Shown piece by piece: positions 13,396 through 44,853 of a DNA stretch of 64,000 bases. Positions within the stretch are counted from its first letter, which is position 1. Each line of letters starts with the position of its first letter. Under the pieces are notes generated by a model. It did no database searches, was not told the DNA's origin, and was given only the letters and a program-made list of their open reading frames with translations. The position numbers and the translations under genes are program-made. This DNA is from Bispira polyomma (Eukaryota), in NCBI GenBank assembly GCA_965649765.1, contig OZ287756.1, positions 50,344,001 through 50,408,000 of the forward strand, read 5' to 3'.

Positions 13396-13480
13396 TTGTA
13401 AATGAACCCGTAGCCAAAAACCAAAATAAGGGTCTACACATTATATGGTGTGTCTTGGTGTCTTGATTGTCTTGATTTTC

Positions 13481-13529
<49 letters not shown>

Positions 13530-14045: not shown

Positions 14046-14906
14046 TTAAAAGGGTCCTTCTTTAAGATTCTGGATGTTTTTAACGAGCGCATCACACTTT
14101 TGTTTGAATGTCTGATCTGGTTTGAAATGAAGACACCTAAGTTTCATCATCCACATGTTTTGCCGCATCAAGCTATCAACCCCGCTGTTTACTGTCCCAT
14201 CCTTGTTTGGTGTACACCACTTCCAAGTTCTCTTACATATTACTGTAGAACGTTGAAGCGTTTCCTCTTCTTCATCCTCTGAATCATCGGGTAGTCCGTC
14301 CACATAATCTTGATCCACTATACTGATTACAGAAAGTCCGTGGTGTATTCCATAGGTGTTTAGTAGATGGTCAAAATGAGTGCTTTCTTTTGGGTAGGCT
14401 GATTTTAGATTACGAAGGTGAAATATGTCAATGGGTACCACGATGTAGAGGGCCCAGGGATGTTTGCGGTGCATCAATTCCGCTTTGACTTTAATCTCAA
14501 AAGATGTGATCATCCTCTCAAACAATTGTTCAAAGTTCCTCGGTTCAATAGGGTTATCGTCGTACTCGGACAGATGCATATAAACGTTATCCAATTCACT
14601 ATTTATGTTTAAACTATATTGTAAAGCCGGTAATGCTCGCGATGTTGTAAGCTCGCTGTAGCCATTTAGAATAACAACTCTTGTGGGAATTACTGCTAAG
14701 TTTTGTATTTTTAGTTGCGCCTCTGGTGCTTGCACGTCAGTACTTGGATGCGGTCTTTTAACACGCAGCAGCAATTTTGGAGTCCCCGGCGGATAAGGAC
14801 CAGTGGTTGCTGGTATTCTTGTTTGCACACCTAAACTGTGTGCCTTCATTGGTTTTAAAGTCATCAACACCTTTGGGTAATGTGGGTTTTTTCCACCCAA
14901 ATCCAT
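14046..14906 (-). CDS. Hypothetical virus-like protein, 286 aa (paralogue of 18190-18866)
   Basis: Intact ATG-to-TAA ORF with downstream AATAAA; aligns by eye with the 18190 ORF. Confidence 0.75.
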   Translation of the reverse strand: MDLGGKNPHYPKVLMTLKPMKAHSLGVQTRIPATTGPYPPGTPKLLLRVKRPHPSTDVQAPEAQLKIQNLAVIPTRVVILNGYSELTTSRALPALQYSLNINSELDNVYMHLSEYDDNPIEPRNFEQLFERMITSFEIKVKAELMHRKHPWALYIVVPIDIFHLRNLKSAYPKESTHFDHLLNTYGIHHGLSVISIVDQDYVDGLPDDSEDEEEETLQRSTVICKRTWKWCTPNKDGTVNSGVDSLMRQNMWMMKLRCLHFKPDQTFKQKCDALVKNIQNLKEGPF

Positions 14907-14945
14907 GTTTTTTTTTTAAAAAAAATATGTCACGTTCACTTTTTT

Positions 14946-15209
14946 ACATATAATGTGTAGACCCTTATTTTGGTTTTCGGCTACGGTTTCATCCTATAAC
15001 CACGACAGAAGGTCAATAAAATTCTTTGACGAGCACCATAAATAGAACCGAAGATATAAAATAATAGATTCCTTCGGCTCTTTCGATATACCACGATGGT
15101 AGGTAACTTAAGTTCTATTACGGGTTCTCTAAGGAAACCGTAGCCGAAAACCAAAATAGGGGTCTACACATTATATGTGGTGTCTTGGTGTCTTGATTGT
15201 CTTGTTTTT
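14946..15209. repeat. Inverted pair of the same motif around a ~145-bp spacer (MITE-like or hr-like)
   Basis: ACATATAATGTGTAGACCCTTATTTTGGTTTTCGGCTACGGTTTC (14946-14990) is inverted at 15134-15178 and extends as GGTGTCTTGGTGTCTTGATTGTCTTGTTTTTC to ~15210. Confidence 0.9.
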
Positions 15210-18187: not shown

Positions 18188-18189
18188 CT

Positions 18190-18866
18190 TTGGAATATCC
18201 TAAACTAGAAGAAATAACAATCAACTGTACCAGACCACAGCAGACCACTATCATTCATGGTCTTAGTGAATTAACCCAACGAGAGTCTTTACCTCATTTA
18301 AAGAAAGCACTCTGTCAGGATGGAAAAAGAGATACGGTCGGATACTTCATCCATATAACAGGAGCTCGCAACGGGGATCTAGAGCAAGTTTTTGAAAGGT
18401 TGAAGGGAGCTTTTGAAAGAAAAACTGAAACTCATTTCAAGCGCTTCCAACTCCAGTGGGAGCTATTCTTTGTGGTACCCGTTGACATATTCTGGATAAA
18501 CCCAAAAGAATATCGGTGTCCAAGTAAGAAGATTGAAGAATTCGTTGGTGCATTAGAAAAAGGTGGAATAGATACCGTGTCAATGATTAACGTGCTAGAC
18601 CCCAACTACCACAAGATGAGTACGCGCATGAAATAGCTGGGCTAAAACGACAGGAAAGCATAAAAAGGTGTCTGGGTTCTCAGCCGTACCACCGTAGAGA
18701 AGATAGTACTAGAACAGGGTGTGCGAGAGCGGACAAGCTTTTTACTGACCACAGCTTCATAAGCAGCTTGAGGTGTTGCCACTTGTCAAAGATAGGAGTC
18801 GAAAGCGCGTCGAGGAAACTGGTGAAGGTCATCAACGCCCTTGAGCCCCAAACCGACGAGATGTAA
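18190..18866 (+). pseudogene. Paralogue of the 286-aa protein; 5'-truncated, one frameshift near 18620
   Basis: IIHGLSELT..SLP/LEQVFER/WELFFVVPVDIF versus ILNGYSELT..ALP/FEQLFER/WALYIVVPIDIF; the shifted frame gives SLRCCHL...KLVKVINAL versus KLRCLHF...ALVKNIQNL. Confidence 0.75.
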
Positions 18867-22150: not shown

Positions 22151-22202
22151 TTAAAACTTATAAAACAAACCTATTTCCTTTAAATAATTAAAAATAATAT
22201 AT
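22151..22202 (-). pseudogene. Displaced last codons of LINE ORF2 (IIFNYLKEIGLFYKF*)
   Basis: In frame with ...LKELLHTNVY at ~39970 once the piggyBac and one ATAT are removed. Confidence 0.85.
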
Positions 22203-25083
22203 CCTTTAGAGTGCCAAAATGTAATTTGCCGTGTTTTTTTTTCGATTGCCGTAATGCGGAAGACCTAACTCTGTTGGACTGCCGAACCGTAATTTGCGTA
22301 TAAAATTCCAGCTTTAGACAACGCCACATGTTTATTCTGCAGGAGTGCCAAACCGTAATTTGCGGATGTTTTTTCAGTTATTTGAAGCGCGGTATGTAAG
22401 TACAGGCCAAGAGCCGTTTTAGTTTTTTTGTAGCTATTTATTTATGATAAAACAAAGTGAGAAACATTCCTGTGCTACATATTTTAAAGGGTGGCAAGTA
22501 TTGATTATTTTTTGTCTGCCATCTCGTAATATTATGTTCATTTAACACAGAAAAGGACCTTTAGAAAAGGCCCATATTATCGCCCACTGTGTAGGCACCA
22601 TATAAACATCTTGTTAGACATGAATGTATACATTCTTTCGTCAAATTAAACATGTTATCTGTTACTAAAATAGTATGTAAGTATCTTTCTTAAATCCAAT
22701 AAAAATAAAATTTAAATGCTGCTGAGATTTTACGTAAGAAATACATCCACTAAATTACACATTGGCGCTGACAGGTTCCTACATTTCCAATGTTGTCTCC
22801 ATGTGTCGATTAGGGCCGTTATTCTAAAAATAATTGCCGATTATTCACTCATAACTCAGAAATTACTGAAGTTAAAAATAACATGAAAATATTCCGAGAA
22901 AGCTTACTTTATTGCGATTAGTTTGGTTTTTGTTGTATCAAAATCTGTCGAGAAATGGCCGAGATATTTAAGTTTAAATACAGGTACCCATTTGCAGATA
23001 AATAGTTGAATACGTCAAAATAACCTTGAAATAAAAGACAAGCCCATTAGTTTATTAATATTCTATTTCCATCATTTATTCTACTGTTCTATAAGACAAA
23101 TCCTTCTTAAATATTGTCTTAATAAACTTATTTGTCTCAGCCATTTGTTAATGGATTTTTATTAACATTGCCTTTGAAATAATATACTTCGATTTTTTTC
23201 TTCATTGATTGTCAGGGACCAATTTACATATATTTATTTCTATATACTTGGAGCCAAATCCCTGTGGAGTAAAACCTCTTGCAAGATACCCTACCTATTT
23301 TATCACTGTGTACCAATTATCGCTACCCAAATTGTAACTTTTTTATGTGATTAGATTCCTGAAAAGAAATTTATCAGACAAAAATGTTTACTGCCCTGCT
23401 TCCTATTATCGACAGGTATCAATTATCGCCAGCCTAAATTTTAAACCAAATTCTTTGTTGCCAAAACAGCCCTGTTTTCATTGATGTGTGGCTGTTAGCG
23501 ACAGAGTGGTTAACATAAACCATACTTCACAAATCTGAAAACGGCACATGTAACATACAAAAAGAACCTTCCAAAGTTGTTTGCGGTTATATTGGTAATA
23601 AATAACAGCCGTATACAGTGTTATAACTTGTGGCCAAGCTAAAAGCAATTGTTTAAAAATATATCATCATTTAAAAATATTTCTGTATCTCGCTTTGTAT
23701 ACATAATTGTAAATTGTCGTGTCAGATTTGTTAACTTCTGTCCCTCGCCATGCATATCAACAGTAAAAATCAAAGCATCGTCAAGGACAGACAAATTGCT
23801 CTATATAAATTTAAACTATTATAAAATGGCAAATAGTATCTCCTAAGTCTGAAAAAATTTGGCGTAGCTTTTGCTGTGTATTGTAAAAGATCAGCTACAA
23901 TTAAATGGGAGTGATTGAATTGGTACATGGTGATAGGTGGTACATGGCAGTAAATAGTATACATTATAATAATTTACATTCATATAGTTTAACAGATTGG
24001 TTCATTAATAAGTTCATTCTGGGTAACAAAATTCTCCAGTGGGTTAGACCGGTTTTCTGTCCCATCACAGGATGATTTTATTTTACTGATAGTAAGCATC
24101 ATGAGTGACAGAATTGTTAACTAGCGAATCCTTGTTAATGTGTAAGAACAATAAAAATGCCAGAAATAACACCCTAAAATCAAGAATTGGTTAGTAGAAA
24201 CTACATGTACATGGAATTGAAGATAAATGAAAATAAATGACAATATCAAAATTTTTGTGAACCATTTTAGTCCATATTTGTAAGTATCAAAAATGAATGC
24301 AATTATTATACACATCTTGAATGAAAATGTAAAAGTGTATGTTTCAGACAGTTAATGCTTGGAAAAGAACTGGTGTGGATCTGTGGCCAGATGAGGCGAT
24401 TTGTCTGGATAACGCACCATTTACTGACTGAACACTACTGCCCATCAGCATTGACTACTGATTATTGCAACCCCAAATTTAAATCATTACATTAAATGTG
24501 AGTAGCTTCTGAACATTTTATTTCTGAGTGTCGGTAATTGGTAGCCAACAATAATTTGTAGCATGGAAGTACCAGGAAAGTTTTTTCACTCAATTAAATA
24601 AACTAAAAACAAGTTTGCCAGAGTTAATAAGTTACGGCGGATTTACAGCATGGTCCATGTGTTGTACATTATATTCCAGGAATTATTCTAGATTACGATT
24701 GTCTGTATCCAAACAATTATGGGGCAATATGATGAGCCAACTAATTTTATGAAAAGTAACTTTTATGTATTTACGTATTGTGAATGAAATATATTCATTG
24801 GTAGGAAACTGTCAACTTATTATTTATTACTAAAATTAGTTGTATTTTCCCTGAGTGAAAATATTAGTGTATCATTTATACGCAGAAATGTGAAAAACAG
24901 TTACACACACTATGTTGATCTAACACGTACTACTTTGTATATGTACAAATCTCAATCCAGGTCCACAGATTAACCAGCTTGACAGAAAAGATTTGATTGG
25001 TCACAAGTTCTAATGGATTGTCACTTCAAATAATTGGACTACCAATTAAGGTAACATTTTGAATGTGTGTGCAACTAATGAAG

Positions 25084-25240
25084 CAGGGGCCATATTCACA
25101 AACAGTCTTAGTCTTAAGCTTAACATTTATGTCTAAAATATTTGATGGATTTGTGTTAAGAGCAATGTTTATGCAAACCAAAGACCTGTTCTTACTGTCC
25201 CTATACTTAAGACTAAGACCGTTTGTTAATACGGCCCCTG
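25084..25240. mobile_element. MITE (PIF/Harbinger-like TIR)
   Basis: CAGGGGCCATATTCACAAACAGTCTTAGTCTTAAG ... CTTAAGACTAAGACCGTTTGTTAATACGGCCCCTG. Confidence 0.8.
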
Positions 25241-25324
25241 CTTCATTAGTTAATAATAACATAACATACTTGAACCTAATCATTTGTATTGTTGTCAGTA
25301 CAGTTTACATTCAAAACTATCTAT

Positions 25325-25832
25325 GTAGAGTCATTTTTCGTTTGGGAATCCGTACTGATGTCACACCATACCTTAAGAAACTTCTCTGGCTTCCTATTCA
25401 CCATCGAATCCTGTTTAAAATGCATGTAACCATTTTTAAAGCTGTTGTCTCTCAACAGCCTCACTACCTCACTACTAAGCTTTCCTTCAGCAGCCTTCCA
25501 AGGGGAAAAAGACTCTGTTTTCTTTAAAACACCCACCAAGAGGGTTGGATTTAAAGCCTTCTTGGTCGCCGCCCCTATGTTATGGAACAGTCTTCCAGTT
25601 GAACTCAGACTGCTCGATACACTTTCTGGTTTTAGGAAAAGGCTTAAAACCTATCTCTTCAGCCTCGCCTATCCGCCGTAGTCCTCTTCCTGGGCGCTGA
25701 CGCATCCATCCTTACGACCTGGCTATGTTTTTCATTATTCTTTTGGCTGATTGATTCTGATATTGCGCCTTAGAAGATGCCTAGCAACAATAACGCGCAT
25801 TAAAAATATACAATACAATACAAAAAATACAA
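25325..25832 (+). mobile_element. 5'-truncated L2/CR1-group LINE 3' end
   Basis: VTPYLKKLLWLPIHHRILFK and AFLVAAPMLWNSLPVELR...FRKRLKTYLF; (CAATA)n tail at ~25808-25832. Confidence 0.85.
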
Positions 25833-27246
25833 TGTATGGTAGATATTTTGACAATCAAATTGTGATGCAAATTTTTAAGTTCTGGGTTTATTAATCTGTA
25901 TTTTATAAATTTCCTCATTTGTTTTAAAAGTTATTTTTAAAATGTATAGCCAATGGTTTAGAACAAGATATCATCAAGACTGTGCTCTATTTATGGCAAT
26001 TTTCACTTTAATATGGCACTTGCCATTCGTAATACATGCACTATCAGCCGACACTAAAATATGTGTTATATTTTTAAGGATGAGAGTCCCAAAAATTAAA
26101 AACAGTTTAGCCATTGACCTGGATAGGTAAGAATTGGTATTGTATTTTGTTTAATATTTTTACACTCTTTATTTGTGAGAGGTATCTTCTAAAACCACAA
26201 CAACTAAATCAATAAACCAATCATGTGTCCTACAATATAGCCTGGGTCGTCACCAGTTAGCAATGATGTTTACATCTTGCCCAAGCATGTTATATCCCAC
26301 CAATGAACCTAGTGACATTAGCAGGATTAAAACTAGGGATCTTTCAATCATCAGATAAACTCCTTTAATCTAGAATCGAACCGGGGACCTTCCGATCACT
26401 AGACCAATTCCCTAACCAGTAATCTACTGTGCACCAATTTATGCATAAGTTTTAACAGATCATGCTTCACTGTCTGTTGTTAGTCCAGATTAATTTTATC
26501 AATTCCATTGACAATGTACTGTTGTCATGAATAATGAAAAAGTTATATTGTATAAATTGTTGTTGCACTGCATTTTATTCTAACAATATGATACTACAGA
26601 AAAAGTCTATTTATCTGAACGATGCTAAAGACATCAATTTTGGTCTGACAAACGGAATGTTTGTATGTTATTTTTGCTATCGGCAGTTTGACCCGGTTCC
26701 TAGAATCTTCCATTGTCGCCCCAGCCTCTTACAGCATGATAACAATATTCCATCCCAAAATACATTCAAACCTACCTTATACAAGTGGCGAGTGGCTGGT
26801 GTTTTACTATAATCCTTTCATTCAACAATTGGCCATTGTTTTGGTGGAAAAGACTGACAGCCTCTTGATGAATAGGTTGATTAAAATTCGCTTTTGTAAC
26901 ACAAATAAATGCTTTTAAATTAAAAAATATATATATACTTACATAGAAAATGATACTTGTTTTCTAGTGCTTTGTGTTATGAAATTTAACCCTCTGATAG
27001 AATATTGAATAAAATCCCTGATTATTGCCCACAGAACCGTTTTTATGAGACAAATGTTTTAAAAGTTGGGGGACATCGGTTTGGTTAAACTAGATTTACG
27101 GATGAATGGAGGTTGTATAAACAAGATTCTTCTGTACTCTTATTTAAGCTACTTAAGTTACTTTAAAATCCACAGCATAGGGTGAATAAGGTTGTTTAGA
27201 CTGATTATTTTATGATTGATGCCAAACTATAATGTTAATATTTCAG

Positions 27247-30200
27247 GACTGCATGCTTTTCTAATGAAAAACTTGATTCAGTGGCACAAAGTTTATTACC
27301 AGAGGAATATGGTCATCTGATTCCAGTTAAATGTACTGGCGATGGAAACTGTCTGTACAATGCCATGTCCATATTAATTTCTGGTAAATTAATAGTTAAG
27401 TAATTTTTTATGTTAGCTAGTGTGATGTTTAATGTCAGTATTGTTGCTGCCTTTATTAATTCTGCCATATGTTATTGTTTGGACTTGCCTGTATTTGTGT
27501 GTAGCAGAAAAACTGATTTTTTTTTCATGTGGAACAATTATATCAATATTCTATTATCAAACATAACAACGTTTCTGCTGTTGACAGGTGTCTCGCTTGT
27601 CTCATAGCATCCATTTCTGTTGCCCAAATATTTATCAAACATTTTAATCAAGGTCTGTAACTACAAAATTTAATATACTTGTACATTATTACTTATGTCA
27701 CAGCCATTCATGGCTATCCGTCAATCAGATGATGCATTTTTCTTGCCTGAGACTGAACCTCTGGAAATACACATAGATTTAGCCACTGTGGCCTAGTGGT
27801 TAACATACTCATTTAGGAACACAGAGGAGCTGGGTTTGATCCTAGTATGGGTTGACCAGATACACAAAGATACATAGTGGCTCAGATGACCACTCAAATG
27901 ACAGTCCTCTGTCATTAGGGCCTATCCCCAGTGGCAGGCTACAGATCCTTTTAGATGTTGATAAATTGTCACCCCAAGCCTCACACTTCAGGTAGGCGAA
28001 TGGTAGTTAACTGATGCTGGTTGGCTGTTTGCAGTCAAAAATAGGTTAATTAGTGCTTTGACTACCAGATAAAAGCATATAACTGTACTGAGTATCAATT
28101 TGAATAGAATAAAATATTTGCATTAGGAGCTTCTATCCTATAAGGCATACTACAGTATTCATATTTTGAAGTGTGAGTGTAAAGATTTACCACACATAAT
28201 TTGACTTCCTTTGGCCTTGAAGAAATTGCATGTTCATACACAGTACCTAACTCTATGTTTGGCATATTAACGGCTATTATATTAAGATTGAAAAAGGTTT
28301 TGTGAAATAATATTTACATATGGGAATAATTTGAGATGCTTTGGAGCTAAAATTTGAGTTTAGTTTCATTGTAAGTTTGGTATTTTGTCTTTACCTAAAG
28401 TCTATATATGGGCTATAGGTATTTTTTTCCCCGTACAACCAGATAGGCGGCCATCCAGGCAGCGTATGCTTATGTTTGTTTGGGCTAGTTCTTAGAAACC
28501 GAAGTAAGTTTATATTTAGTACAAGTATTTTTAGGGGGTTGTAGTTATGCAATGTCATGGTCTGATTTCACCCAAAGGCTGGGGGTTTGACATCCTTACG
28601 CTATTTTTTTTTTACAAAATTCAATATTCTTTATCATAACATAATTGTGTCATTTAAAATCATGTACTAATTGCCTGACTGGTAATCTGTCTTAGGTGAT
28701 GAATCCCTCAGTGACTACCTTCGCAAAGAGAGTTCAAAAGAACTGCAAACAAACTCAGAGCATTATGCAAAATACATAAAATATCATATTGAGTGTAACA
28801 ACCAAAATGGTGTTTTTGATGATGAAACATTGTTTCATTCAATGCTTTCGGAAGACACAGTAAAGATATATGAAAATGTGAAGAAAGACAAAATAAAACT
28901 GCTACAAATTGAAGTTGATCTATCCATAGTTTCTGGAAGGTGGAGTACGTTTATCAACTTATTCCCCTTGAGCACAGTTTCCAGAAGGAATTTATGTTCA
29001 GTTTACCCAACCAAAAATCCACCATTAAGATCGGTCTACAATTCTACCATAACCTCAAGGTGCAAGACTACACAACCTGATGCCCATATATTGTGGTCCA
29101 GAGATGGCATGTTAGAGAAGGGAATGTACACACCAAATCATTTTGTGCCTTTATTACCACTAACTCTACCAACAGTTTTAGATTTAGATGATAGTTTTGA
29201 TGAAATATTGTCTCAACTAGATTTGGCAAATGTGACAATGGATTCCTCAATCAGCCTGCTTACACCTGACATAAGTGTAAGTAACACTGATTTAGCCCAA
29301 CAGGACATGACCAACATTCATGAGGAAAATAACAAAATACAAAAACCTAATGAGGATCAAACTGTTCAACATGAACGCATCAATACTGGAGATGAGAGCT
29401 CTACAGAGGATCAAACTGTTCAACATGAACGCATTAAGACCCAAAATGAAAACTCTACTGAGGATCAACCTGTTCAACATGAACACATTAATACTGAAGA
29501 TGAAAGCTCTACTGAGGATCCAACTGTTCAACATGAACGCATTAATACTGAAGATGAAAGCTCTACTGAGGATCCAACTGTTCAACATGAACGCATTAAT
29601 ACTGAAGATGGTAGCTCTACTGAGCATCAAACTGTTCAACATGAACGCATCAGTACTGAAGATGAAAGCTCGAATGAGCATCAAACTGTTCAACATGAAC
29701 GCATCAATACTGAAGATGAAAACTCTACTGAGCATCAAACTGTTCAACATGAAAACATTATTACTCAAGATGAAGGCTCTACTGATGATCAAACTGTTCA
29801 ACATGAACACATCAATACTGAAGATGGTAGCTCTACTGAGGATGAACCTGTTCAACATAAACGCATTAATACACAAGATGCAAGTTCTACTGAGGATCAA
29901 AATGTTCAACATGAACGCATCAGTACCCAAAATGAAAACTCTACTGAGGATCCAACTGTTCAACTTGAACACATTAATGCTGAAGATGAAAGCTCGAATG
30001 AGCATCAAACTGTCCAGCATGAACGCATCAATACTCAAGATGAAAATTCTACTGAGCATCAAACTGTTCAACATGAACGCATTAATACTGAAGATGAAAG
30101 CTCTACTAAGGATCAAACTGTTCAACATGAACGCATCAGTACCCAAAATGAAAACTCTACTGAGCATCAAACTGTTCAACATGAAAACATTAATACTCAA

Positions 30201-33200
30201 GATGAAGGTTCTACTGATGATCAAACTGTTCAACATGAACACATCAATACTGAAGATGGTAACTCTACTGAGGATCAACCTGTTCAACATAAACGCATTA
30301 ATACACAAGATGCAAGTTCTACTGAGGATCAAAATGTTCAACATGAACCCATCAGTACCCAAAATGAAAACTCTACTGAGGATCCAACTGTTCAACATGA
30401 ACACATTAATACTGAAGATGAAAGCTCGAATGAGCATCAAACTGTTCAACATGAACGCATCAATACTGAAGATGAAAGTTCTACTGAGCATCAAACTGTT
30501 CAACATGAACGCATTAATACTGAAGATGAAAGTTCTACTGAGCATCAAACTGTTCAAGTTGAACGCATTAATATCCAAGATGAAAGTTCTACTGATGATC
30601 AAACTGTTCAACATAGATGCATTAATACCCAAGATGGAAGCTCTACTGATGATCAAACTGTTCAACATGAATGCATTAATACCCAAGATGAAAGCTATTC
30701 AGAGGATCAAACTATTCAACATGAACCCATTAATAACCAACATGAAAGTTCTACGGAAGATCCAATTGTTCAACTTAAACGCATTAATATCCAAGATGAA
30801 AGTTCTACTGATGATCAAACTGTTCAACATGAATGCAATAATACCCAAGATGAAAGCTCTACTGAGGATCAAACTGTTCAACGTGAACGCAATAATACCA
30901 AAGATGAAAGTTCTACTGGTGATCCAACTGTTCAACATAAACGCTTTAATACCCAAGATGAAAGCTGTACTCGTTATCTAACTGTTCAACTGGAACGCAT
31001 TAATACTGTAGATGAATGCTCTACTGATGATCAAACTCTTCAAGATGGATGCATCAATGCCCAAAATGAAAACTTTACTGAGGTTAAACGGCTCAAAAAG
31101 AAAAGGATCAGTATCCAAGATACTAAAACCAAGAAAAAGCTGTTTAAAAGTGTTACAAAATCAGTAAGAAATAATTGTAACACAAAGGTTAAAGAAAATA
31201 AATATATCAATGTTGCAAGTGTTTTTAAGAAAGGCCAAAAAAGACAAATATCTGAAAATGATTGTAGTTTAGATATATTGGCAAAGGCATTAAAGAGGAA
31301 AAAAACTATATTAAATGACACAAGAAATGGTCTAGAATCATCTGACAATGACTCAGACATTAGCTTGGACTCTGATATTGAATGTGTTCAATCAGATGAT
31401 GATGATGATCCAGCTGAAACATTTACAGACAGCCTGACATGGAAAAGTAAATGTTTTCCAATGAAAAAGCCCAAATTTGCTGGTCCGGCTCCAGGAGTGA
31501 GCAAAGATTTTGTTTTGGATAAGGATGCAAAAGAATTAGACTTTTTTTTCAGTTTTTTTCCAGAAGCAATGCTTTCTGAAATGGCCAAAAATGCAAATAA
31601 GTATGTACCAATCTACAGTACATTGCATTCCAAATTATCAGATGACCCATACATTGACAAGGACTTCAAACCTATAACAGAAAGTGATATCAGAGCTTTC
31701 TTTACCTGCAGGATGGTGATGGGGGTAACAAAACTACCTCATACTGATGATTATTGGTCCACAGATCCAGCCATGAGGAATAATTATATCAGCAGAATAT
31801 TGTCACGAAGCAAGTATAGGCAAGTAAACCGCTACTTCCACATTAATGATCCTACAAAAGACCCTGCACGGTTAACCAACAGAAAGGCCAAAACTGAAGG
31901 TATGGCCAATGATCCACTGTATAAAATTCGCCCATTGCTTGACAGCATCAGAGCACAATGTTTGAAGTTATATAATCTGAATCAGGAAATATCAGTTGAT
32001 GAGGCAATGATTAAGTTCCATGGTCAACATTTTGGCACTATCGGAGCACCACATAAACCCGCCAAACGAGGGTTTTGCATCTTTGCATTAGCTGATGGGC
32101 ACAATGGTTACTTTTCCAACTTTGAGGTATACCTTAGAAAAAAAGAAAAAGAAGTGGGTCTCACTACTCGTGTTGTAGAAGACCTGGCAAGACCATTCTA
32201 CAACAGGCAACATATAATTTTTGTGGACAAATTCTATACGTCAACGAATTTAGCATTGTCATTATTAAATAAAGGGACCCAGTTAAATGGATCATTTAAC
32301 AAAGCCCGTAAAAATTGGCCAGAGGATTTGAAGCCAAACTGCAGTGTCCGAAAGAAGGTTGATCCTGTCAGAACATTGGAAAGAGGGCAGTGCATATACA
32401 GACAGACAGAAAACGGAAAGCTAGTAGCATGCATATGGAAAGATTCTTCCTTGGTCTACAACCTAAACACATGCTACAATATCAATGTGAAGATCACAAA
32501 TGTTAAAAGAAAGACCAGGTTAAATGGAGCATGGATTGTGGATGATCTCCCCTGTCCTGAACCCATCAAAGAGTTTAACAGATTTATGGGGGGAGTAGAC
32601 CAACATGACCACCTGAGAAGTAGTTACACTGTTCAAAGAAAAGCAAAAAAGTGGTGGCATTATTTTGCCTGGTTTGCGATTGACATATCGTTGATCAATG
32701 CATATATACTATGGAAGCTGACCCACAAAGGGACTCACAAAACTTTCAGTTAGAGGTGATTTTGAAATATAAGTTGAATTTTGTTTATCTGTTTGACTTC
32801 TTTGCTTGTTACACTGTCTTGCAGGAAATTTTGAAATTTATTTATTTTTGGTTTATTATTTTTGTTTCTGTTTTTACAATTTCAAACATGCATAGCCAAA
32901 TACAGTTTACAAGTTATTTTGTCATCTTTTTCTTCAGAAATGGTGTCTTATAAAGATTGCAGAGCTGGGGCCATATTCGCAAAAGGGATCAGTGAAAGTG
33001 AAAAATTTGAAAACAAAAATTGGCTGAGCAAAAGATGAGCGAACAATAAGCTCAAATGTTTAGATCAGATCAAATTTGGTATTCACTTTAAAGTTGAGTT
33101 GATTTTTCACTCATCTTACAATACTAAATATTGCTTGAAATTTGTTATATAAGCTATTATATGTCTTTATAATCGTTTGTCCAGCCAAAATAAAGCCTAG

Positions 33201-34765
33201 TACTTCCAAGTTTAGTTTTCTGCCAGGTGATCAAAATTATGGCTATATCAAGATTATGGTCACTGACGATACAATTTAAATGGAAAGGAATTCATATAAC
33301 AGCTGTTTAATATGTACAAAAAACTTAAAAATTGTGTTTTAGTTGTTAAAACTGATATAATTTTTGGCTTAGCTGATCCTTGCTTTGTGAATACCAATTT
33401 GATCGAAAGCTCAGCTAAGCCTTTTTGAAAGCTGATCTTGAGCTGATTTTTCGCTCAACTTGATCCATGTTTGTAAACATGGCCCCTTGCAGTTTAATAT
33501 TAGTTCAAAAGCTTGGATTGTTTTGGCCAGTTTATTAATTTGGATGAATAGCTATTTATAATAATATTTGGTGGTGGTTTTGTTATTTTACAAAGGATGC
33601 ATAACTTTTAGATAATTTACAGCTGCCAAATTTCAACCTGTTATTGATTGTAATACTTACATAGGTTGCTAAGCAGCTGTCAGGACAAAATTTTATATGT
33701 TAAAGTTTTAGTGCAGGTCGATTATGTTGAATGTTTGGCATGATATTTGGTGGTGGTTTTATTAATTTACACAGGATGCACAAGTACAGCCAATTTATAG
33801 CCGACAAATTTTAACCTGTTATTACTTGATTTTTTTTAGGTTGCTAAGCAGCTCTCAGGAGAGTTCACACGGACAAATCGCCAAAACCAAGAAAGAGACA
33901 TTGGGCCTCAAGCCGAAGGACATACTAGAACCGTATTCAAAGGGCGACCGAGAATCTGTCTGCAATGCAAACGGGAGGGAAAGAAGACACAACGTGGGCG
34001 GTGTCCAGAGACACCACTGGGTTGTCTCGACTGTGGTGTCCATGTTCACAAGTAATTTTTTATTTCATATGGATGTATTCATAATTAAGTTATTGTCAGC
34101 ACTACAACACCTGTTCTCCACTGTATACACCAGTAACTGCAATTCCCTAACTAGGCCGCAATAGCAGTTAGGTGCATTACCAATATACTATCAGTCATGT
34201 TTTAACTTGGTTAAAGTATGTTTATATTATATTTTGGATATTGACTTTCCACAAACTTGTCTTTTTTTTGTTGAGTAAATTTTTTAAGGAAAAGATATGA
34301 AAGATATGTTTTTTGATAAATATGTGCAGTGAACAGTTTATGTTACTTAAATAATATGATTCTGTTATTTTACGTGCATAAATGTGAAATGGGGTTGATT
34401 GGTATTTTAGAATGTTTCCCTTCAAATACAATGCAATTTAATGCCATCGTATTATTAGTTGCATGAAAACGTTTGTATTAAATGATATCTATGTGTATTA
34501 TTACAGACAATGCTTCATTGCATTTCACAAGGGTGAATGTTACAGATCAAAGTCAAAAATTATTAATTTTGACAAATCCACACAGTGCCCAGAAGAAAAG
34601 CATGACCAGGAAAGTTTTGATCAAATTCATACAGACTTCCCTGTGGAGAAGAAAGACCATGTAAATGATAAACATCAACGCTCAAAGCGTGTGCATACAG
34701 ATGCAGCACTCGAACCAAATGAGAGACAGAAGCGTTCAAAACGTGGGCGTAAGAAAAAGTTGTAA
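27247..34765 (+). CDS. Spliced OTU/vertnin-like protease - 18-aa repeat - piggyBac DDD transposase - Cys-rich domain fusion; exons 27247-27383, 28696-32755, 33840-34051, 34507-34765 (upstream exons not identified; 1-nt frameshift near 32740)
   Basis: GT-AG introns with matching phases; CTGDGNCLYNAMS...SVYP...ILWS...PNHFVPL (OTU/vertnin); SVDEAM, VDKFYTS and MGGVDQHD (piggyBac DDD); CLQC...CLDCGVHVHKQCFIAFH (CRD). Confidence 0.85.
27781..28000 (+). mobile_element. Degenerate tRNA-headed SINE within an intron
   Basis: A-box-like TGGCCTAGTGGTTAA and B-box-like GGGTTTGATCC. Confidence 0.5.
29350..31082 (+). repeat. In-frame 54-bp coding minisatellite (EDQTVQHERINTEDESST, ~32 units)
   Basis: Visible directly in the DNA and in the 1307-aa ORF. 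Confidence 0.95.
32965..33486. mobile_element. MITE (PIF/Harbinger-like) in a transposase intron
   Basis: GGGGCCATATTCGCAAAAGGGATCA ... TGATCCATGTTTGTAAACATGGCCCC. Confidence 0.75.
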
Positions 34766-35090
34766 GTTAAATAAAATGCCAGAACATGAAATAATAATTG
34801 GGCCTTAGTTGTAAAGTTAAAAATTTTAAAAATGTATTTCGGCTGTTTAGTATGTTTAAGTGATGTTATCAACGAGTTTTGCCTTAGAAAGGTAGGTGAA
34901 ACTCGTTAATGTAGTGGTTTTTGATCGGTAGGACAGTATTGTTACCTAATTTGTTTTCATTTTTGGAGCTGATTTCGGTCTAATATACATCTTTTAGGGC
35001 AAAAATAATGCACCTGTTTAGATATTTGCAAAATGTACTTTATTTTTCTTTAATAATTGAAGGTTTACCAGTGTGACCTACCTGGATAAC

Positions 35091-35699
35091 CCTGGGGCCG
35101 TATTCACAAAAGGGATCAGCTCAAATCTGAAAAAAAGATTAACTTTTACTCAACTTTTGGCTCAGCTCCAACTTGGTATTCACAAAAAAAATTAGCTGAT
35201 ATTTGGCTCAACGTTTTGCTCAACTTTAATCCCTGCAGGTAGCTGGTTTAAATTTGGATCAGTGTGTATCAAATATGGCGGAATTCAGTTGTGTGAAAGA
35301 ACTAGTTTATTTTTCATCAAGGAGTCTCCACCGCCAGCGTATTTTCCGTGACCGTATGAACCCACTTCATTACCTAAGTGATGAAAATTATATTCAAAGT
35401 ATAGGTTTAGCAGAATGGAATATTGTTTTTAATAGAAGTTTTACAGAATCAACTAAGTCGGCCCACCAATCGATCACACTCTGTTCCTATCCATCTGCAT
35501 ATTCTGGCTTCCGTGTATTATTTGGCAAGTGGCAGCCATAATTGCAGACGATAATGTATTGGAAGTATGAAGTTTGTTTACATCTCACATTTTCACGCGT
35601 GATCTTAGCTTACACCGTATCAAATAGTTGAGCTCTTTGGCTCATATTTGAGCTGATCTTAAGCTGATCTTGAGCCATTTTAGTGAATACGACCCCAGG
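35091..35699 (+). mobile_element. Internally deleted PIF/Harbinger transposon
   Basis: TIR CCTGGGGCCGTATTCAC / GTGAATACGACCCCAGG; internal RQRIFRDRMNPLHYLSDE resembles the Harbinger transposase N-terminus. Confidence 0.75.
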
Positions 35700-35879
35700 A
35701 ACCAGTAATTAATGCTTGTTCCTGTTGTTTATTACCATTTACGTGCATGCGCACAGGTCACGAAAGCACATCTCGTTTGTTATGTTTGGTATTATCGCCT
35801 GCATTCTCGCCAACATTGCTCATGTCAAAAAAACAAATTTCATAATATTTAACATAAACTTATTTTTAAGCCTGAAACT

Positions 35880-36296
35880 ATTATGTTGATGGTTGTATAT
35901 TCCTTAATGTACACAAGGGCTTCTATTGGGCCAGAGGTTAATAATGTTGATGATTGTATATTCCTTGATGTACACAATGGCTTCTGTTGGGCCAGAGGTT
36001 GTTGATAGTTTTATATTCGTTACTGTACACGAGGCTTCTATTGGGCCAGAGGTTAATAATGTTGATGATTTTATCACCCTTAATATACACAAGGGCTTCT
36101 ATTGGGCCAGATGTTAATAATGTTGATGATTGTATATTCCTTAATATACACAAGGGCTTCTATTGGGCCAGATGTTAATAATGTTGATGATTGTATATTC
36201 CTTAATATACACTAGGGCTTCTATTGGGCCAGAGGTTAATAATGTTGATGGTTGTATATTCCTTAATATTCATTAGGGCTTCTATTGGGCCAGATG
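35880..36296. repeat. ~61-bp tandem repeat, ~7 copies
   Basis: GGGCTTCTATTGGGCCAGAGGTTAATAATGTTGATGATTGTATATTCCTTAATATACACAA. Confidence 0.9.
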
Positions 36297-37193
36297 TATG
36301 GCTATAATGAAATTTCTTGATTTTTTCTTGATGCACTTGACTTACACTTGTAATTATTTTTATATGCAATTTAAGTGATTTTAACTAGTGGGTATTTTGT
36401 TCATATTTTGTAAATAACTTGTTTATATTTTGTTTGGTTTGGTACTTGACTTTTTTTAGTTGTAGTAGAAGCTTTTCACTAGAACAAAATTGTCTTTGAT
36501 AAACATATATTTGTGTTTACCGGATTTTACTTGGTTTTTATAATTTTGTAGTTTTAACTTTTATTGTATCTTTTGGTGGTAATAATTCTTGAGATTTAGT
36601 AAATTATCTGTTCAAAGTTAAAAAAAAAAATAACCTTTTTACGGACATTTTTAGTATAAACTCAGTTAAACTTCAAATTTTTATAAAGGACTTAATCCTG
36701 CTAGGATATTTAGTAGTTTAAAATGATCATATTGTATTCTGTGTACATGGAATTGTCCACTAAAACAAGCGATTGTATCTATATTTACAACCTGTGAGGG
36801 ATATCTTCCATGGTGAAAAAAATAAAATATGCTCTTTTTATGCATTTTTGTTTTACTGTGGTTTTGACAATTAGTACATAAAGTATTGTCTTTGCAGAGT
36901 TTTAGGTATGACTATATATTAAATCAAGGCCATAATGTTAAAATGTACAGTCTAACCCTGTTATTTCGAATTTAAAGGAACCACCCGACTTACTTCGACA
37001 TAAGCAGAACTCGAGTCCATGGGCGATAATGAAAGATTTTAACCAAATACATTTTATATGCATTTTGAATTAAAATCGTTGAAGTGAATGATAAATAAAG
37101 ACATATAATTTAATGCAACTGTTTATCCTTTTTTATGCAACAAAACAATAAAATTCTTAACAAAGGTTGATTTTTATGAGGATAACTTTCGTG

Positions 37194-39648
37194 ACATTGG
37201 CCAATAACAGATTTTGTCACAAGTATCTTTACCTTAACACAACAAACATACAAAATTACACATTGGCTAATAACCGATTTTGTCAAACGTATGTTCACCG
37301 TAACACAGCAAACATACAAAATTACACATTGGCCAATAACAGATTTTGTCAAATGTATCGTTACCTTAACACAACAAACATACAAAATTACACATTGGCT
37401 AATAACCGATTTTGTCAAATGTATGTTCACCTTAACACAGCAAACATACAAAATTACACATTGGCCAATAACAGATTTTGTCAAAGGTATCTTTACCTTA
37501 ACACAACAAACATACAAAATTACACATTGGCTAATAACCGATTTTGTCAAATGTATGTTCGTTCACCTTAACACAGCAAACATACAAAATTACACATTGG
37601 CCAATAACAGATTTTGTCAAATGTATCTTTACCTTAACACAACAAACATACAAAATTACACATTGGCTAATAACAGATTTTGTCAAATGTATGTTCACCT
37701 TAACACAGCAAACATACAAAATTACACATTGGCCAATAACAGATTTTGTCAAATGTATCTTTACCTTAACACAACAAACATACAAAATTACACATTGGCT
37801 AATAACAGATTTTGTCAAATGTATGTTTGCTAATAACAGATTTTGCCGCATGTATCTTTACCTTAACACAACAAACATACAAAATTACATATTGGCCAAT
37901 AACAGATTTTGTCACACTTAGGTTCACCTAAACACAGCAAACATACAAAATTACACATTGGCCAATAACAGATTTTGTAACACTTAGGTTCACCTAAACA
38001 CAACAAACATACAAAATTACACATTGGCTAATAACAGATTTTGTCACAAGTATCTCTGCCTTAACACAACAAACATACAAAATTACACATTGGCCAATAA
38101 CAGATTTTGTCACATGTGTCTTTACCTTAACACAGCAAACATACAAAATTACACATTGGCCAATAACAGATTTGGTCAAATGTATGTTCACCTTAACACA
38201 GCAAACATACAAAATTACACATTGGCCAATAACAGATTTTGTCAAATGTATCTTTACCTTAACACAGCAAACATAGAAAATTACACATTGGCCAATAACA
38301 GATTTTGTCACACTTAGGTTCACCTAAACACAACAAACATACAAAATTACACATTGGCCAATAACAGATTTTGTCACAAGTATCGTTACCTTAACACAGC
38401 AAACATACAAAATTACACATTGGCTAATAACAGATTTTGTCAAATGTATCTTTACCTTAACACAACAAACATACAAAATTACACATTGGCCAATAACAGA
38501 TTTTGTCACATGTATCTTTACCTTAACACAGCAAACATACAAAATTACACATTGGCCAATAACAGATTTTGTCAAATGTATGTTCACCTTAACACAGCAA
38601 ACATACAAAATTACACATTGGTCAATAACAGATTTTGTCAAATGTATCTTTACCTTAACACAACAAACATACAAAATTACACATTGGCTAATAACCGATT
38701 TTGTCAAATGTATGTTCACCTTAACACAGCAAATATACAAAATTACACATTGGCCAATAACAGATTTTGTCAAATGTATCTTTACCTTTACACAACAAAC
38801 ATACAAAATTACACATTGGCTAATAACAGATTTTGTCAAATGTATGTTTGCTAATAACAGATTTTGCCGCATGTATCTTTACCTTAACACAACAAACATA
38901 CAAAATTACATATTGGCCAATAACAGATTTTGTCACACTTAGGTTCACCTAAACACAGCAAACATACAAAATTACACATTGGCCAATAACAGATTTTGTA
39001 ACACTTAGGTTCACCTAAACACAACAAACATACAAAATTACACATTGGCCAATAACAGATTTTGTCACGTATCTTTACCTTAACACAGCAAACATACAAA
39101 ATTACACATTGGCCAATAACAGATTTGGTCAAATGTATGTTCACCTTAACACAGCAAACATACAAAATTACACATTGGCCAATAACAGATTTTGTCAAAT
39201 GTATCTTTACCTTAACACAGCAAACATACAAAATTACACATTGGCCAATAACAGATTTTGTCACACTTAGGTTCACCTAAACACAACAAACATACAAAAT
39301 TACACATTGGCCAATAACAGATTTTGTCACAAGTATCTTTACCTTAACACAACAAACATACAAAATTACACATTGGCTAATAACAGATTTTGTCACAAGT
39401 ATCGTTACCTTAACACAGCAAACATACAAAATTACACATTGGCCAATAACAGATTTTGTCAAATGTATCTTTACCTTAACACAACAAACATACAAAATTA
39501 CACATTGGCCAATAACAGATTTTGTCACATGTATCTTTACCTTAACACAGCAAACATACAAAATTACACATTGGCCAATAACAGATTTTGTCAAATGTAT
39601 GTTCACCTTAACACAGCAAACATACAAAATTACACATTGGCCAATAAA
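37194..39648. repeat. 66-bp satellite, ~37 copies, inside the right end of the piggyBac
   Basis: Unit AAATTACACATTGGCCAATAACAGATTTTGTCAAATGTATCTTTACCTTAACACAACAAACATACA. Confidence 0.95.
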
Positions 39649-39967
39649 ACAGTCAATGATAAAATTGCCGCATTACTTATCTTTTATATGCCAATGTGTA
39701 ATTTTGCTATGTTGCCAGTGCATTTTTTTTTTAAATGTGCTAAATTACACATGGCCAATGCAGCACTCAAATTTTTATACAGCCAATTACACATTGGCAC
39801 TCCTGCAGACTTATATATGAAGCACTATCAAAAATCACTTTAATGACGCTAAATTACGGTTTGGCACTCCAGCAGCATTTCATATATGGTTTTTGTAAAT
39901 TTGACTACAAACATGGCAAATTACGGTTTGGCACTCCGACAGAGATAGGTCACTGGCAGTGTAAAGG

Positions 39968-42900
39968 ATATACGTTTGTATGTAACAATTCTTTCAAATT
40001 ATTACTATTAAAATGTTTTATTTGAACGTCATGTAGGTCGATACAGTCTAATAATATATGCCTGACTGTATCGGGACAATGACATGGAATGCACCAGGGC
40101 TTATCCTCACCTTTCAACAGATAACTATGTGTAAAATAGGTGTGTCCTATACGGGCTCGAGTAATAACTATTTCTTCCCTACGAGATAAACCCGTCCAAA
40201 AATTAAAAGCTCCAACTGTAGGGTTTATTTGAAATAGTTTGTTATCAGGACACGCATTCCATTGGGCTTGCCACTTTTGTTTAAAAACACTATTTACATT
40301 AACTTTGAAGTCTGTATAGGGGACTTTCAAGTCTAAAATGTTAAAATTCAATGCTTGTTTAGCAAGCTTGTCTGCCACTTCATTGCCCTTAATACCTACA
40401 TGACTAGGAACCCATGCTAAAATTACTTTTTTGTTCACTGACAAACACGGATTAAAAACCTTTAAAATATCCTGTAAATAGGGATGATCACAGTTATTGC
40501 CATCAATGGCTTTCAGACTAGATAGAGAGTCAGTGAATATAATAAACTTTAACCCCTCACAATGTCTAATAATGTTAAATGCCATTTTCAGAGCCTGCAA
40601 TTCAGCTGTGAATATGCTAGCATTGCCAGGTAACTTGGGCACTGAGGCCATTTGATGTTGCTGCTGCAGCTACTTTGTTTTTATCTTTAGAACCATCAGT
40701 ATATATTGCCCTGTGATCAGAATAACAATTGATCAACTGGCTAAAGAGACTTTGAAATAAATAATCGTCTCCTATACATTTTTTATTTTGTGCCAAGTAG
40801 TAATCAATGTGTGGTTTTTGTATAGTCCAGGGTGGGTCTTCTGGCAATGACACAGTCTGAATTAAATCCAACCGAGGACAACAGCAGCTAAGTCTGCCTT
40901 AATACGATGCCCAAATGATCTTATAGCTGATGGTTTATTTTCATACTTATCAATGTACTGGGGGTTATATACTACTTCATAGGTTGGATTTTGAGGGTTA
41001 CTTTTCAACTTTATTGCATACTGAACACACAGTTTATGAAATCTCAGGTATAATGGTGGTTCATTAGCTTCTACATATAAGCTTTGCATTGGAGAAGTCC
41101 TGAAGGCTCCTAGGCATATTCTTAAGCCCTGGTTTTGAATGGGTTCCAATTTTCTCAAATAAGACTTACGGGCAGAGCTAAAAACTGCACAACCATATTC
41201 CATCCTTGATCTAACAAAAGATCGATACATCCTTAGTAGTACACTTCTGTCTGCACCCCAATCCATTTTTGAGACTACTTTTAATAAATTCATTGCTTTG
41301 TCACATTTCTTACGCACATAGTCAATATGTGCTTTAAAATTAAACTTGTTATCAAGTATAATGCCAAGAAACTTTGTTTGTGTTACTACAGGTATCTGAG
41401 TGCCATATAATGTCAATGTAGGATCTAGATGGAGTTTTCTTTTGTTACAGAAGTGCATGCATACTGTTAGTTTTAGAAAATTTAAAACCATTTTCATCAG
41501 CCCATTTTTCAATTTTATTCAGGCATAGCTGTAATTGTCTCTCTATAGAGGCCATATTATTTGAGCTATATGTTATTGAGAGGTCATCAACAAAGAGAGA
41601 CTTTTCAAAGTTGGATGGAATAATATCACTTATGCTATTGATTTTTAAAATAAACAAAGTAACAGCAAGGATACTTCCTTGAGGAACACCCATTTCTTGA
41701 TTGTGCATATCTGAATAAACTGATCCTAGACGAACTTTGAAAACTCTATTGGATAAAAAATTCTGAATAAAAACAGGCATTCTACCACGAAGCCCTGCCT
41801 TATACAAATCTCTGGCAACACCATATTTCCAAACAGTATCATATGCTTTTTCTAGATCAAAAAATACTGAAACTACATGGTTGCCTTTTAAAAATGAATC
41901 TCTAATTAAAGATTCAAGTCGAACTAATTGGTCTGTTGTCGTTCGACCTTTTCTAAAACCACTTTGATGTACACTTAAAATGTTGTTTTTTTCAAGAAAC
42001 CAAACCAATCTTGCATTCATCATTCTTTCCATGGTTTTGCACAAGCAGCTCGTCAAAGATATGGGACGGTAATTGGACGGGTTTTGTGGGTCTTTACCAG
42101 GCTTAGAAATGGGTACAATAGTTGCTTCTTTCCAGCATTCAGGGATTTCACCAGTTATCCATATTTCATTAAATATGTCTAATAGTACCACAAGTGAATC
42201 CCTTGGCAAATGTTTAAGTAATTGATAATGTACTTCATCAGGCCCTGTGGCTGTATCATGAGACTTTTTTAATGCATCTATCAATTCTGATATATTGAAC
42301 TCCATGTTATAATTTTCTTGGTTTCTTGATGCAAAATTAAGCTTTTCTTTTTCAGCCTTTTCCTGATATTTCTGAAACTTAACAGAGTAATTTTTACTGC
42401 TGGAATTTTTGCTTATTTCTTCTGCCAACATATTTGCTATATCTCCTCTTTCTGTTATTTTACTTCCATCAGTATTTACTAGATGTCTTACTGTTGTATT
42501 ATTTTGCCTCCCATTTATTTTCCTAAGCATTTCCCATACCTTTTTGGCTGAAGTATTTGTATTTAGTTTTGATATATATTCCTTCCAGGAGTTTCTTTTA
42601 GCTGCTTTAATTACACTCCGAGCCTTAGCCCTTCAGTTTCTATATTCATTTATATTTGCCGATGTTGGATTTATTCGGCATTTATCTAGGGCTTTCTGAC
42701 GAGCTTTTTGGACCCTTTTACATTCATCATTAAACCATGGTTTAAAACTACCAGTGGACTGTCCTGAGGATTTAGGTATACTTTTTGTGGCTGTGTCATT
42801 CAATTTACTCATAAAAACAGGAAACTTGTCACTCAAATTTTGAAATGTATGTCTATTAATTTCAAGTGAGCAATGTAGCTGATATTTTACCCAATCAGCC

Positions 42901-43610
42901 TTTTTAATGTTCCAACGGGGTACATTGTCTCTTGGTATATTTTTAACTATATCGATTAGAATTGGGAAATGATCACTACCACATTGGTCACTGTGAACTT
43001 GCCAAGTAAAGTCAAGGAATGTTGAACTGGAACATAATGATAAATCTATTGCAGTTAAAGATCCTGTAGCTGGATGTAGATATGTAGGAGAATAGTCATT
43101 GAGTAAACAAACACCAGATAAGTCTAATATATGCTCAATCTTTTCTCCTCTACTATCACAGTGATTTGAACCCCACAAATCATTATGGGCATTAAAGTCA
43201 CCTATTAATAAAAATGGTTGTGGCAGTTCATTGACTAGATTATCTAAGTTTTTCTGTGTAACTGTACAACTTGGTGGAATATATATACAACATATAGTTA
43301 TGGTTTTGTGTAGGGATACATTAACTGCTACGGCTTGTAACTGTCTGGTTAAGGAGATTACTTCATGTGGCACACCTTTTTTAACAAATAATGAGCAACC
43401 TCCAAATACTCTTCCATTAACTTCTGAAACACTAGTTTTGTAATAGTGATCAAAGCCTCTCAATTTGTAATTATCATTGTCTTTAAAATATGTTTCCTGC
43501 AAAGCTAAAATGTATGGACTAAAATCAGAAATTAAATGTTTAATTTCTTCAAAATTTGGCTTATAGCCACGACAGTTCCACTGGATAATGTGTTTTTGGT
43601 TTGGTTTCAT
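39968..43610 (-). pseudogene. LINE ORF2: APE endonuclease - reverse transcriptase - RNase H (several frameshifts)
   Basis: QWNCRG, LQET, GDFNAH, SDHFP; NYRPISL, QSGFR, DLEKAYD, GVPQGS, FVDD; YTDGS, AELQA, TDSLS, WVPSHVGIKGNEVAD. Confidence 0.95.
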
Positions 43611-43619
43611 TATTTAATT

Positions 43620-44853
43620 TTATTTACAATTTTGACTCCGAGGTCTTCCTCTATTATTTTGTGGTGGTAGATCAACCATCATTTCATTATCATCCTCACC
43701 ATCTGAGTAAAGAGTATCTTGTTTATTATATTGTTTAATAAGATCATTTGACCCTTTTGAATTTCTATTTCTATTGAGAATTACCTTACTCTGGTTATTT
43801 GTCACTTTGACTGATTCATTTTGTGATTTGGTTGCTTCAGTTTGACATGAAGATGTAACTTTGGTTAAAACTACTTTTGAATCCTTTTCATTTGTTGCTT
43901 GTGGTAATTTTTTGGGACTTTTTAATGTTTCTGGCCAAGTCATATCTGTCTGAGTTTCTTTGGAGCAAAGTGTCACAGATTTTGTTACTTTGGCATATGA
44001 AGTTTTTACATTATTAAATATTGATATTTGTTTCTTGGCTTCTGTATAAGATATACCTCTTTCAGTTTTGATTTTTTGGATTTCTTTTTCTTCTTTCCAT
44101 TTTGGGCAAGTTTTGTCGGTAGCTGAATGATTTCCCTCACAATTAATACACTTGGCATCATTTTCGCATTCATGTATATCTGTATGATTCTCACTACCAC
44201 ATTTTGGGCACACTTCTTTTCTTCTGCATGTAAATTTTGTATGACCAAATTTTTGGCATCTGAAGCACCTCATTGGATTTGGAACAAACACTGACACAGG
44301 CACTCGCAAATAACCCACCCTAATGTATTTTGGTAGAACTTGGCATGCAAAAGTCAATATGAAAGTCCCAGTACGCCTTCTTTCGCCCTCTCGAAAAATC
44401 GTTATTCGGTCCAACTTTACAACACCCTCAGATTGTAAACCTTCTAATATTTCATCATCTGCACATTCTTTAATATCTGGACATCTTATCACTCCTTTCT
44501 TTGTATTCAAAGTATTGTGAGGGGTTACGCTTATTGGTATAGAGTAGTCCATTGTCAAGTCCAATTTTGTTGTTTTCAAAAGTTTGTCACTTTGCTTTTC
44601 TTTATCAACCTCAACTAAAATATTTCCTGATCTTAGTTTTTTTTATGTTGATAGGTTCAGTGCCCAAAACAGATAAAATGGCCTTATTAACAGCGAAAGG
44701 TGAGAGTTTCAGTAGGGAATTTTCTGTTTCAGAACCTTGCAAAAGTAAAAATCGAGGCCAAGAACAAGCAATACCAGTTTCCAAAGTCATAAATCCTGGG
44801 TCATTCGTGGGTCGAGTCCTTTTCCTTCCATCCGTTTGATTTTGTGATGCCAT
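43620..44853 (-). pseudogene. LINE ORF1 (gag-like, three zinc knuckles); frameshift near 44620
   Basis: KLSPFAV, PHNTLN..KGVI, PNPMRCFRCQKFGH, CPKCG..H, CINCEGNH...C. Confidence 0.9.

Follow-up and report, generated by a model that had tools for sequence, protein, structure and literature searches.

A piggyBac transposon lineage with ATAT target sites and a predicted OTU-type deubiquitinase domain on its transposase

Cysteine proteases of the ubiquitin and SUMO systems have been known on several superfamilies of DNA transposons for 15 years, and the role of the OTU type among them is untested. OTU and Ulp1 domains have been published on Ginger1, Mutator and Helitron proteins (PMC2836005, PMC6431247), and the VTD domains of Helitrons are active deubiquitinases of K48 and K63 chains, with a proposed role in keeping transposition proteins from proteasomal degradation (PMC9741609). 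Two surveys of piggyBac elements describe TTAA targets, with ATAT either a rare single-copy mutation or unlisted, and mention no protease (PMC5381638, PMC10813416); our full-text literature searches returned no report of a piggyBac element with an OTU domain. Here we describe such an element in a 64,000-nucleotide stretch of the Bispira polyomma genome (assembly GCA_965649765.1, contig OZ287756.1, positions 50,344,001 to 50,408,000 of the forward strand; hereafter the window, to which all coordinates refer). The element spans 17,765 bp (22203–39967) between 14-bp terminal inverted repeats (TIRs) and ATAT target-site duplications. Its exons encode the two halves of an OTU domain, a long acidic repeat linker, a piggyBac transposase core and a Cys-rich C terminus.

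The gene model consists of four forward-strand exons, all with AG/GT ends. Exon A (27247–27383) holds the OTU domain's N-terminal part, with a conserved Asp codon at 27275 and the catalytic Cys codon at 27350 in a GDGNC motif. It reads TACF...IPVKCTGDGNCLYNAMSILIS and terminates in phase 1: one leftover base is followed by 45 residues to GDGNCLYNAMSILIS and then by one G, which together with the GT at 28696 gives a Gly in frame with DESLSDYLR at the start of exon B. Exon B (28696–32755) is open for 1351 codons. It begins with the C-terminal part of the OTU domain (28698–29160), where DESLSDYLR is followed by W82, SVYP, ILWSR and PNHFVPL and the catalytic His codon lies at 29139. An acidic linker follows, made of an in-frame tandem array of 32 units of 54 nt, or 18 amino acids (29347–31083; 25% Asp/Glu, 24% Ser/Thr), whose unit number differs between copies of the element while the frame is kept. 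A basic/acidic N-terminal region then leads into the piggyBac core (31398–32750), with catalytic Asp codons at 31998 (SVDE), 32226 (VDKF) and 32598 (GVD), plus 32607. This core matched PF13843 (E 1.2e-70), piggyBat (E 1.6e-27) and 6x67 (E 3e-17), and its Asp residues align with those of piggyBat and are invariant in nine relatives.

The remaining exons supply the C terminus. Exon C (33840–34051) completes the DNA-binding region and encodes the greater part of the Cys-rich domain (CxxC...CxxC...H), and exon D (34507–34765) encodes the CF..FH end of that domain and a basic tail that could serve as a nuclear localisation signal. The CxxC-CxxC-H-CF-H pattern spans both exons in all copies and in four relatives, and is out of frame in the window copy. 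We searched each exon separately; taken one by one, exons C and D had no match in Pfam. Exon A has no in-frame ATG, and a profile of the relatives' N termini picked out no start exon, including a 48-nt candidate upstream (26079–26126, forward strand; AG/G ATG...MRVPKIKNSLAIDLD AG/GTAAGA), which is in phase with exon A, occurs in all copies and is unproven. An earlier note on this DNA had proposed that a small exon missed among the open reading frames (ORFs) splices in phase to a large exon running without a stop from DESLSDYLR through PNHFVPL into a transposase with all three catalytic Asp residues, and that the protein exceeds 1500 residues with its Cys and His intact. At the level of sequence the in-phase exon ends, the open frame of exon B and the active-site residues held, and the length is borne out by two copies elsewhere in the genome that are open through all four exons (E and G; 1574 and 1613 amino acids from exon A onward, by arithmetic).

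The N-terminal domain belongs to the OTU family, as the note had also expected. Against a profile of 32 unspliced proteins, exon A matched positions 5–48 with 44.7 bits and exon B positions 51–206 with 121.8 bits, compared with 5.6 and 5.2 bits for the best of 200 shuffles. Aligned pairwise to one homologue, the exons cover residues 8–51 and 53–205, leaving only the junction Gly between them. A search with the His half found 164 relatives among cluster representatives, more than 30 of them unspliced proteins in which G[DN]G[ND]C and NHF occur together. The Cys–His spacing of 159 residues in the window model falls within the 147–167 seen in the 32 aligned unspliced homologues. Conservation of the active-site residues is high: the Cys is present in 32/32 homologues and the His in 39/39, and 27/32 have an Asp 25 residues ahead of the Cys. 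Neither Asp nor Asn occurs at His+2; the upstream Asp may correspond to Asp70 of A20, the third catalytic position in the A20 subfamily.

Comparisons at the level of fold point the same way. The family profile matched OTUD1 (E 7e-9), VCPIP1, A20, Cezanne and OTUD5, and 27 of the 41 family members matched PF02338. For the fold we modelled an unspliced homologue that occurs in nature (P0076), with a predicted local distance difference test score (pLDDT) of 91. Its closest structural matches were VCPIP1 (Z 13.8 over 172 aa, 3.2 Å), OTUD3, TRABID, A20 (Z 12.6) and Cezanne (Z 12.5–13.8 overall), and the top 28 were all OTU-type. The predicted fold suggests ubiquitin-type substrates rather than SUMO. 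Because SUMO proteases belong to the Ulp1/SENP class, which is unrelated to the OTU fold, SUMO cleavage is unlikely; of the proposal that the domain counters ubiquitin- or SUMO-based control, the ubiquitin half fits the fold and the SUMO half is not supported.

The fusion is a lineage rather than an accident of one genome, to judge from its relatives in other samples. The eight closest transposases are 46–57% identical; seven have the His half at the N terminus and the eighth begins at a contig edge. One more relative (P0071) came from the domain search, and a further homologue search brought no additions. At 7/7 related loci for which DNA exists, G[DN]G[ND]C lies on a small exon upstream, whose G/GT donor is at the same codon and phase. 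Six loci with cores 46–52% identical keep both the His and the exon B donor, which follows [FY][QH][LI][KEQ] in 6/6, and the exon C donor follows LH in phase 2 in all four loci examined. The introns and linkers of the relatives are otherwise unrelated, several linkers having acidic repeats of their own. Since intron position and phase are kept at about 50% protein identity, splicing is strongly, if indirectly, supported. Two of these loci are complete elements ending CCTTT...AAAGG followed by ATAT (L048, 8.7 kb; L052, 7.9 kb), and two others have one such end (L047, L055). A transposase tree with one outgroup family only did not place the lineage.

The ratio of nonsynonymous to synonymous substitution rates (dN/dS) between L052 and L054 was 0.08 for the OTU His half and 0.06 for the DDD core, compared with 0.56 for the linker and 0.33 for the 45-codon Cys exon. 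In this pair of relatives, the OTU part shows purifying selection. Because transposon families are selected mainly through transposition, the OTU domain probably contributes to transposition. The same A20/VCPIP1-like OTU family also occurs on hAT-type proteins (P0002, P0003, P0063, P0104), a Helitron protein (P0090) and a DUF7869 protein (P0092); OTU domains on hAT transposases were not found in the literature we searched. A tree of the OTU domains did not resolve one from several gains by piggyBac and hAT.

The family has moved recently. The left TIR CCTTTAGAGTGCCA (22203–22216, forward strand) matches the right TIR, whose reverse complement is CCTTTACACTGCCA (39954–39967, reverse strand), at 12 of 14 positions, and its end is common to the other copies. 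The TIRs start CCTTT and, at 14 bp, fit the piggyBac-superfamily trait of 12–19-bp TIRs starting with C. ATAT flanks the element on both sides (22199–22202 and 39968–39971), and the insertion lies within the 3' end of the reverse transcriptase/RNase H ORF of a long interspersed nuclear element (LINE). At eight paralogous LINE sites the sequence agrees with the empty junction, in seven of them with a single ATAT and in one with a one-base variant; a reversed control gave no matching LINE sites. TATA as the duplicated sequence is ruled out, since the flanks of copy F and the length of the empty sites fit ATAT only; the family thus duplicates ATAT rather than the TTAA of canonical piggyBac-like elements.

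We found seven full-length copies (A–G, that of the window being A) on three chromosomes. Because A and B share flanks, as do C and D, they represent five independent insertions. Independent copies diverge by about 0.5–1% (0.2–1.3% by region), which indicates a recent burst. In A/B, F and G, ATAT stands on either side, and in E on the right; the left flank of C/D is TTAT, and their right end is truncated. Domesticated PGBD genes are single fixed copies without TIRs; here there are seven copies with TIRs and target-site duplications. This is a young, recently active cut-and-paste family of the piggyBac group.

Repeats mark both element ends. Three left subterminal motifs AATTACnnnTTGGC (22213–22360, reverse strand) lie about 67 bp apart, and three on the right (39785–39932, forward strand) 67 bp apart. 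Inside the right end, a 66-bp tandem array (37194–39647, forward strand) carries the motif AATTACACATTGGC in every unit, 36 motif copies in all. By motif count the window holds 46 matches to the subterminal motif, compared with 2.15 expected, and these are putative transposase-binding sites. A 1.9-kb stretch (23610–25492) occurs in copies A and B only. In the other copies, the junction where it is missing shows AGCC microhomology and interrupts a common repeat; the stretch was therefore probably lost from them by deletion.

The window copy itself is damaged. A one-base deletion in a run of A residues (four at 32739–32742, five in copies C–G), overlooked in the earlier note, shifts the frame of exon B to a TAG at 32751–32753 (frameshift region 32739–32753, forward strand), two bases before its donor; the other five copies read KNFQLE/V into exon C. 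The earlier note was right that two further exons encode a Cys-rich C terminus, and exon B of this copy is out of frame to them. Its protein would lack the zinc-binding C terminus if the mRNA escaped nonsense decay, and the copy is probably non-autonomous, depending on others to move. An assembly slip is judged unlikely, because copy B, separately assembled and slightly diverged, shares the run of four, which is absent from five copies with that context. Three contig-set runs cover introns and exons alike, without splice joints; they hold only the majority five-A allele and neither confirm nor refute the shorter one. Among the other copies, C/D and F have nonsense codons, and E, one of the open copies, bears a large insertion at the left end. 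The description of the element as mobile rather than domesticated, with intact ends, therefore fits the family and the ends, and not the window copy, which probably cannot move itself.

Our favoured model, which we hold with moderate confidence, is an ATAT-targeting piggyBac element with a tethered, active OTU deubiquitinase that spares the transposase. One spliced mRNA would give a transposase of about 1600 residues, in which an N-terminal OTU cysteine protease of the A20/VCPIP1/Cezanne-like type is followed by a long disordered acidic repeat linker, the DDD core and a zinc-binding domain at the C terminus. Together with the Cys-rich domain, the core would bind the TIRs and subterminal motifs and carry out ordinary piggyBac cut-and-paste with a preference for ATAT, by chemistry extrapolated from the family. 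The OTU domain, tethered through a linker with about 560 residues of acidic repeat in it, would strip ubiquitin chains off the transposase or off proteins close to the transpososome. The most likely effect would be that the transposase is spared proteasomal or p97-driven removal; trimming of damage-signalling ubiquitin at the cut site may be an additional one. The stronger proposition, an undescribed intron-containing ATAT piggyBac lineage with a catalytically active A20/VCPIP1-like deubiquitinase that is needed for efficient transposition, we put forward only tentatively.

Several points weigh against this model. The case is built from DNA sequence and a predicted fold, and the substrate and linkage assigned to the OTU domain are conjecture; OTU domains of transposons are stated to be untested (PMC9741609). 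The structural model is that of a homologue, and a single-sequence fold of window exon B by itself was poor (pLDDT 41). The His half of the window family is more diverged than that of its relatives (122 bits, compared with 145–160) and sits on a long branch in the tree, so its OTU activity may be weakened. The dN/dS estimates come from one sequence pair, that for exon A from 45 codons, and the start codon is not located in the gene model.

The principal alternative is an active deubiquitinase that works mainly on host chromatin or on repair signals where the donor or target DNA is broken, through K63 chains or histone ubiquitin. Tethering by a flexible linker of about 560 residues suits action on neighbours, the same idea has been raised for the OTU and Ulp1 domains of Ginger1 (PMC2836005), and members of the domain family occur on the proteins of hAT, Helitron and piggyBac, all of which make DNA breaks. 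By sequence this target is not separable from self-protection of the transposase, and we regard it as unlikely to be the main one. It is improbable that the OTU domain acts without catalysis in this family, serving to bind ubiquitin or p97, or that it is a passenger in decay: the faster divergence of the His half and the existence of inactive OTU homologues such as vertnin would fit, whereas the window family and its relatives all keep the Asp, Cys and His, and the relatives show purifying selection. A third reading, raised in the earlier note as self-processing, makes the domain a protease with no deubiquitinase role that frees a core transposase of about 600 residues from itself and the acidic linker. 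Some viral papain-like proteases do process polyproteins as well as deubiquitinate (PMC10318531), and the linker is long and not conserved; however, the best structural matches of the homologue model are dedicated deubiquitinases and no conserved stretch in the linker offers a cleavage site, and with no support found for self-processing we consider it very improbable. That exon A is not joined to exon B, so that OTU and transposase are separate or their fusion is a modelling artefact, is almost certainly wrong: the join is read from DNA, but the His half shares an open exon with the DDD core, the OTU halves abut to the residue and the intron lies at the same place in seven diverged loci.

Other features lie in and around the element. 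Its 3' non-coding part has a 61-bp tandem array of seven units (35883–36294), and its introns and flanks contain related elements with GGGGCC(A/G)TATTC ends resembling miniature inverted-repeat transposable elements (32965–33486, 35092–35696 and 25073–25251), the first of which has a very high copy number in reads. The LINE into which the element inserted (39972–44579, reverse strand) is nearly full, with ORF1, endonuclease, reverse transcriptase and RNase H, and is frameshifted. The centre of a large inverted duplication lies at 57525–60725 and 60804–64000 (arms 99.6% identical, 78-bp spacer), and copy B lies in the other arm; the duplication may be real or an uncollapsed haplotype. C and D are a duplicate pair about 99 kb apart. 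Older degraded relatives in the same genome (G000:C9:42.09 Mb, L008; C13:1.69 Mb, L028; C12:15.56 Mb; C2:44.34 Mb) are 40% identical to the family in the core, 57% in the OTU domain and 91% at the right end.

Elsewhere in the window, a cluster of long intronless ORFs (11424–18636) resembles an endogenous large DNA virus, with pieces of a family B DNA polymerase (15209–17110; PF00136, E 1.5e-12) and, by eye, a PD...E.K nuclease-like motif in the ORF at 11424–12722. A Teratorn-like fusion of the element with these ORFs is ruled out, as the element lies, with TIRs of its own, inside a LINE and the flanks of other copies are unrelated. Polinton/Maverick-like genes at 55679–62538 include BIR repeats and an integrase with a chromodomain, along with ORFs judged by eye, without a profile match, to be adenain protease-like and capsid-like. 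A purine-rich low-complexity tandem array with strong AT skew occupies 49888–51422.

If the stronger proposition is right, the element would allow ubiquitin-based control of cut-and-paste transposition by the host to be tested directly, and would be a natural piggyBac whose target site differs. Few transposases are better studied in cell assays than piggyBac, so that a single point mutant could address the OTU question; the ATAT target gives a natural way into the choice of TTAA by piggyBac. The same OTU family also occurs on hAT and Helitron proteins, which points to a common need to resist host ubiquitin. Surveys of transposons based on ORFs would miss the domain, since its catalytic Cys lies on a small exon of its own. 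A piggyBac side group named Repbase piggyBacA or Dfam PiggyBac-A exists (PMC7805219 supplement). This group may be defined by ATAT target duplications, which would fit, and the present lineage may already be catalogued in Repbase or Dfam, with or without its OTU domain noted.

By its PF13843 core, Cys-rich domain and TIRs the lineage belongs to the piggyBac group, but not to the canonical TTAA elements. With Trichoplusia ni (T. ni) piggyBac, piggyBat and other canonical PF13843 elements it shares a DDD core with a fourth Asp, a C-terminal Cys-rich domain, short TIRs starting CC, subterminal repeats and a 4-bp target duplication (PMC5381638). It differs from them in its ATAT rather than TTAA target, its length (17.8 kb, compared with 1.2–9.5 kb), at least three introns and a transposase of about 1600 residues with an N-terminal OTU domain and acidic repeat, where canonical transposases mostly have 500–700 (up to 1316; PMC10813416). 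Ginger1, with OTU or Ulp1, and the OTU Helitrons and Helentrons likewise join a cysteine protease of the ubiquitin or SUMO system to a transposition protein, often in intron-containing genes (PMC2836005, PMC6431247). Ginger1, however, has a transposase of another superfamily and a C-terminal protease domain, whereas the domain here is N-terminal, behind a long repeat linker. The Helitron VTD is also a transposon-encoded deubiquitinase, with measured K48/K63 activity, and the functional model proposed here is borrowed from it (PMC9741609); unlike the domain described here it belongs to a herpesviral tegument-like class and travels on a rolling-circle element. The human OTUs A20, Cezanne, TRABID and VCPIP1 share the long OTU fold, GxGxC, a distal HF/HY motif, a hydrophobic residue at His+2 and WS before the His loop, but are only 15–23% identical and are host enzymes that are not mobile. 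Vertnin, to which the earlier note likened the domain, is described as an inactive OTU homologue without catalytic residues (PMC10318531). The same architecture recurs in the seven related loci. Deubiquitinase-type cargo on DNA transposons was already known (PMC2836005, PMC9741609), with OTU cargo published for Ginger1 and Helitrons, and what appears to be new is not the idea of the fusion but its piggyBac host and ATAT-targeting lineage.

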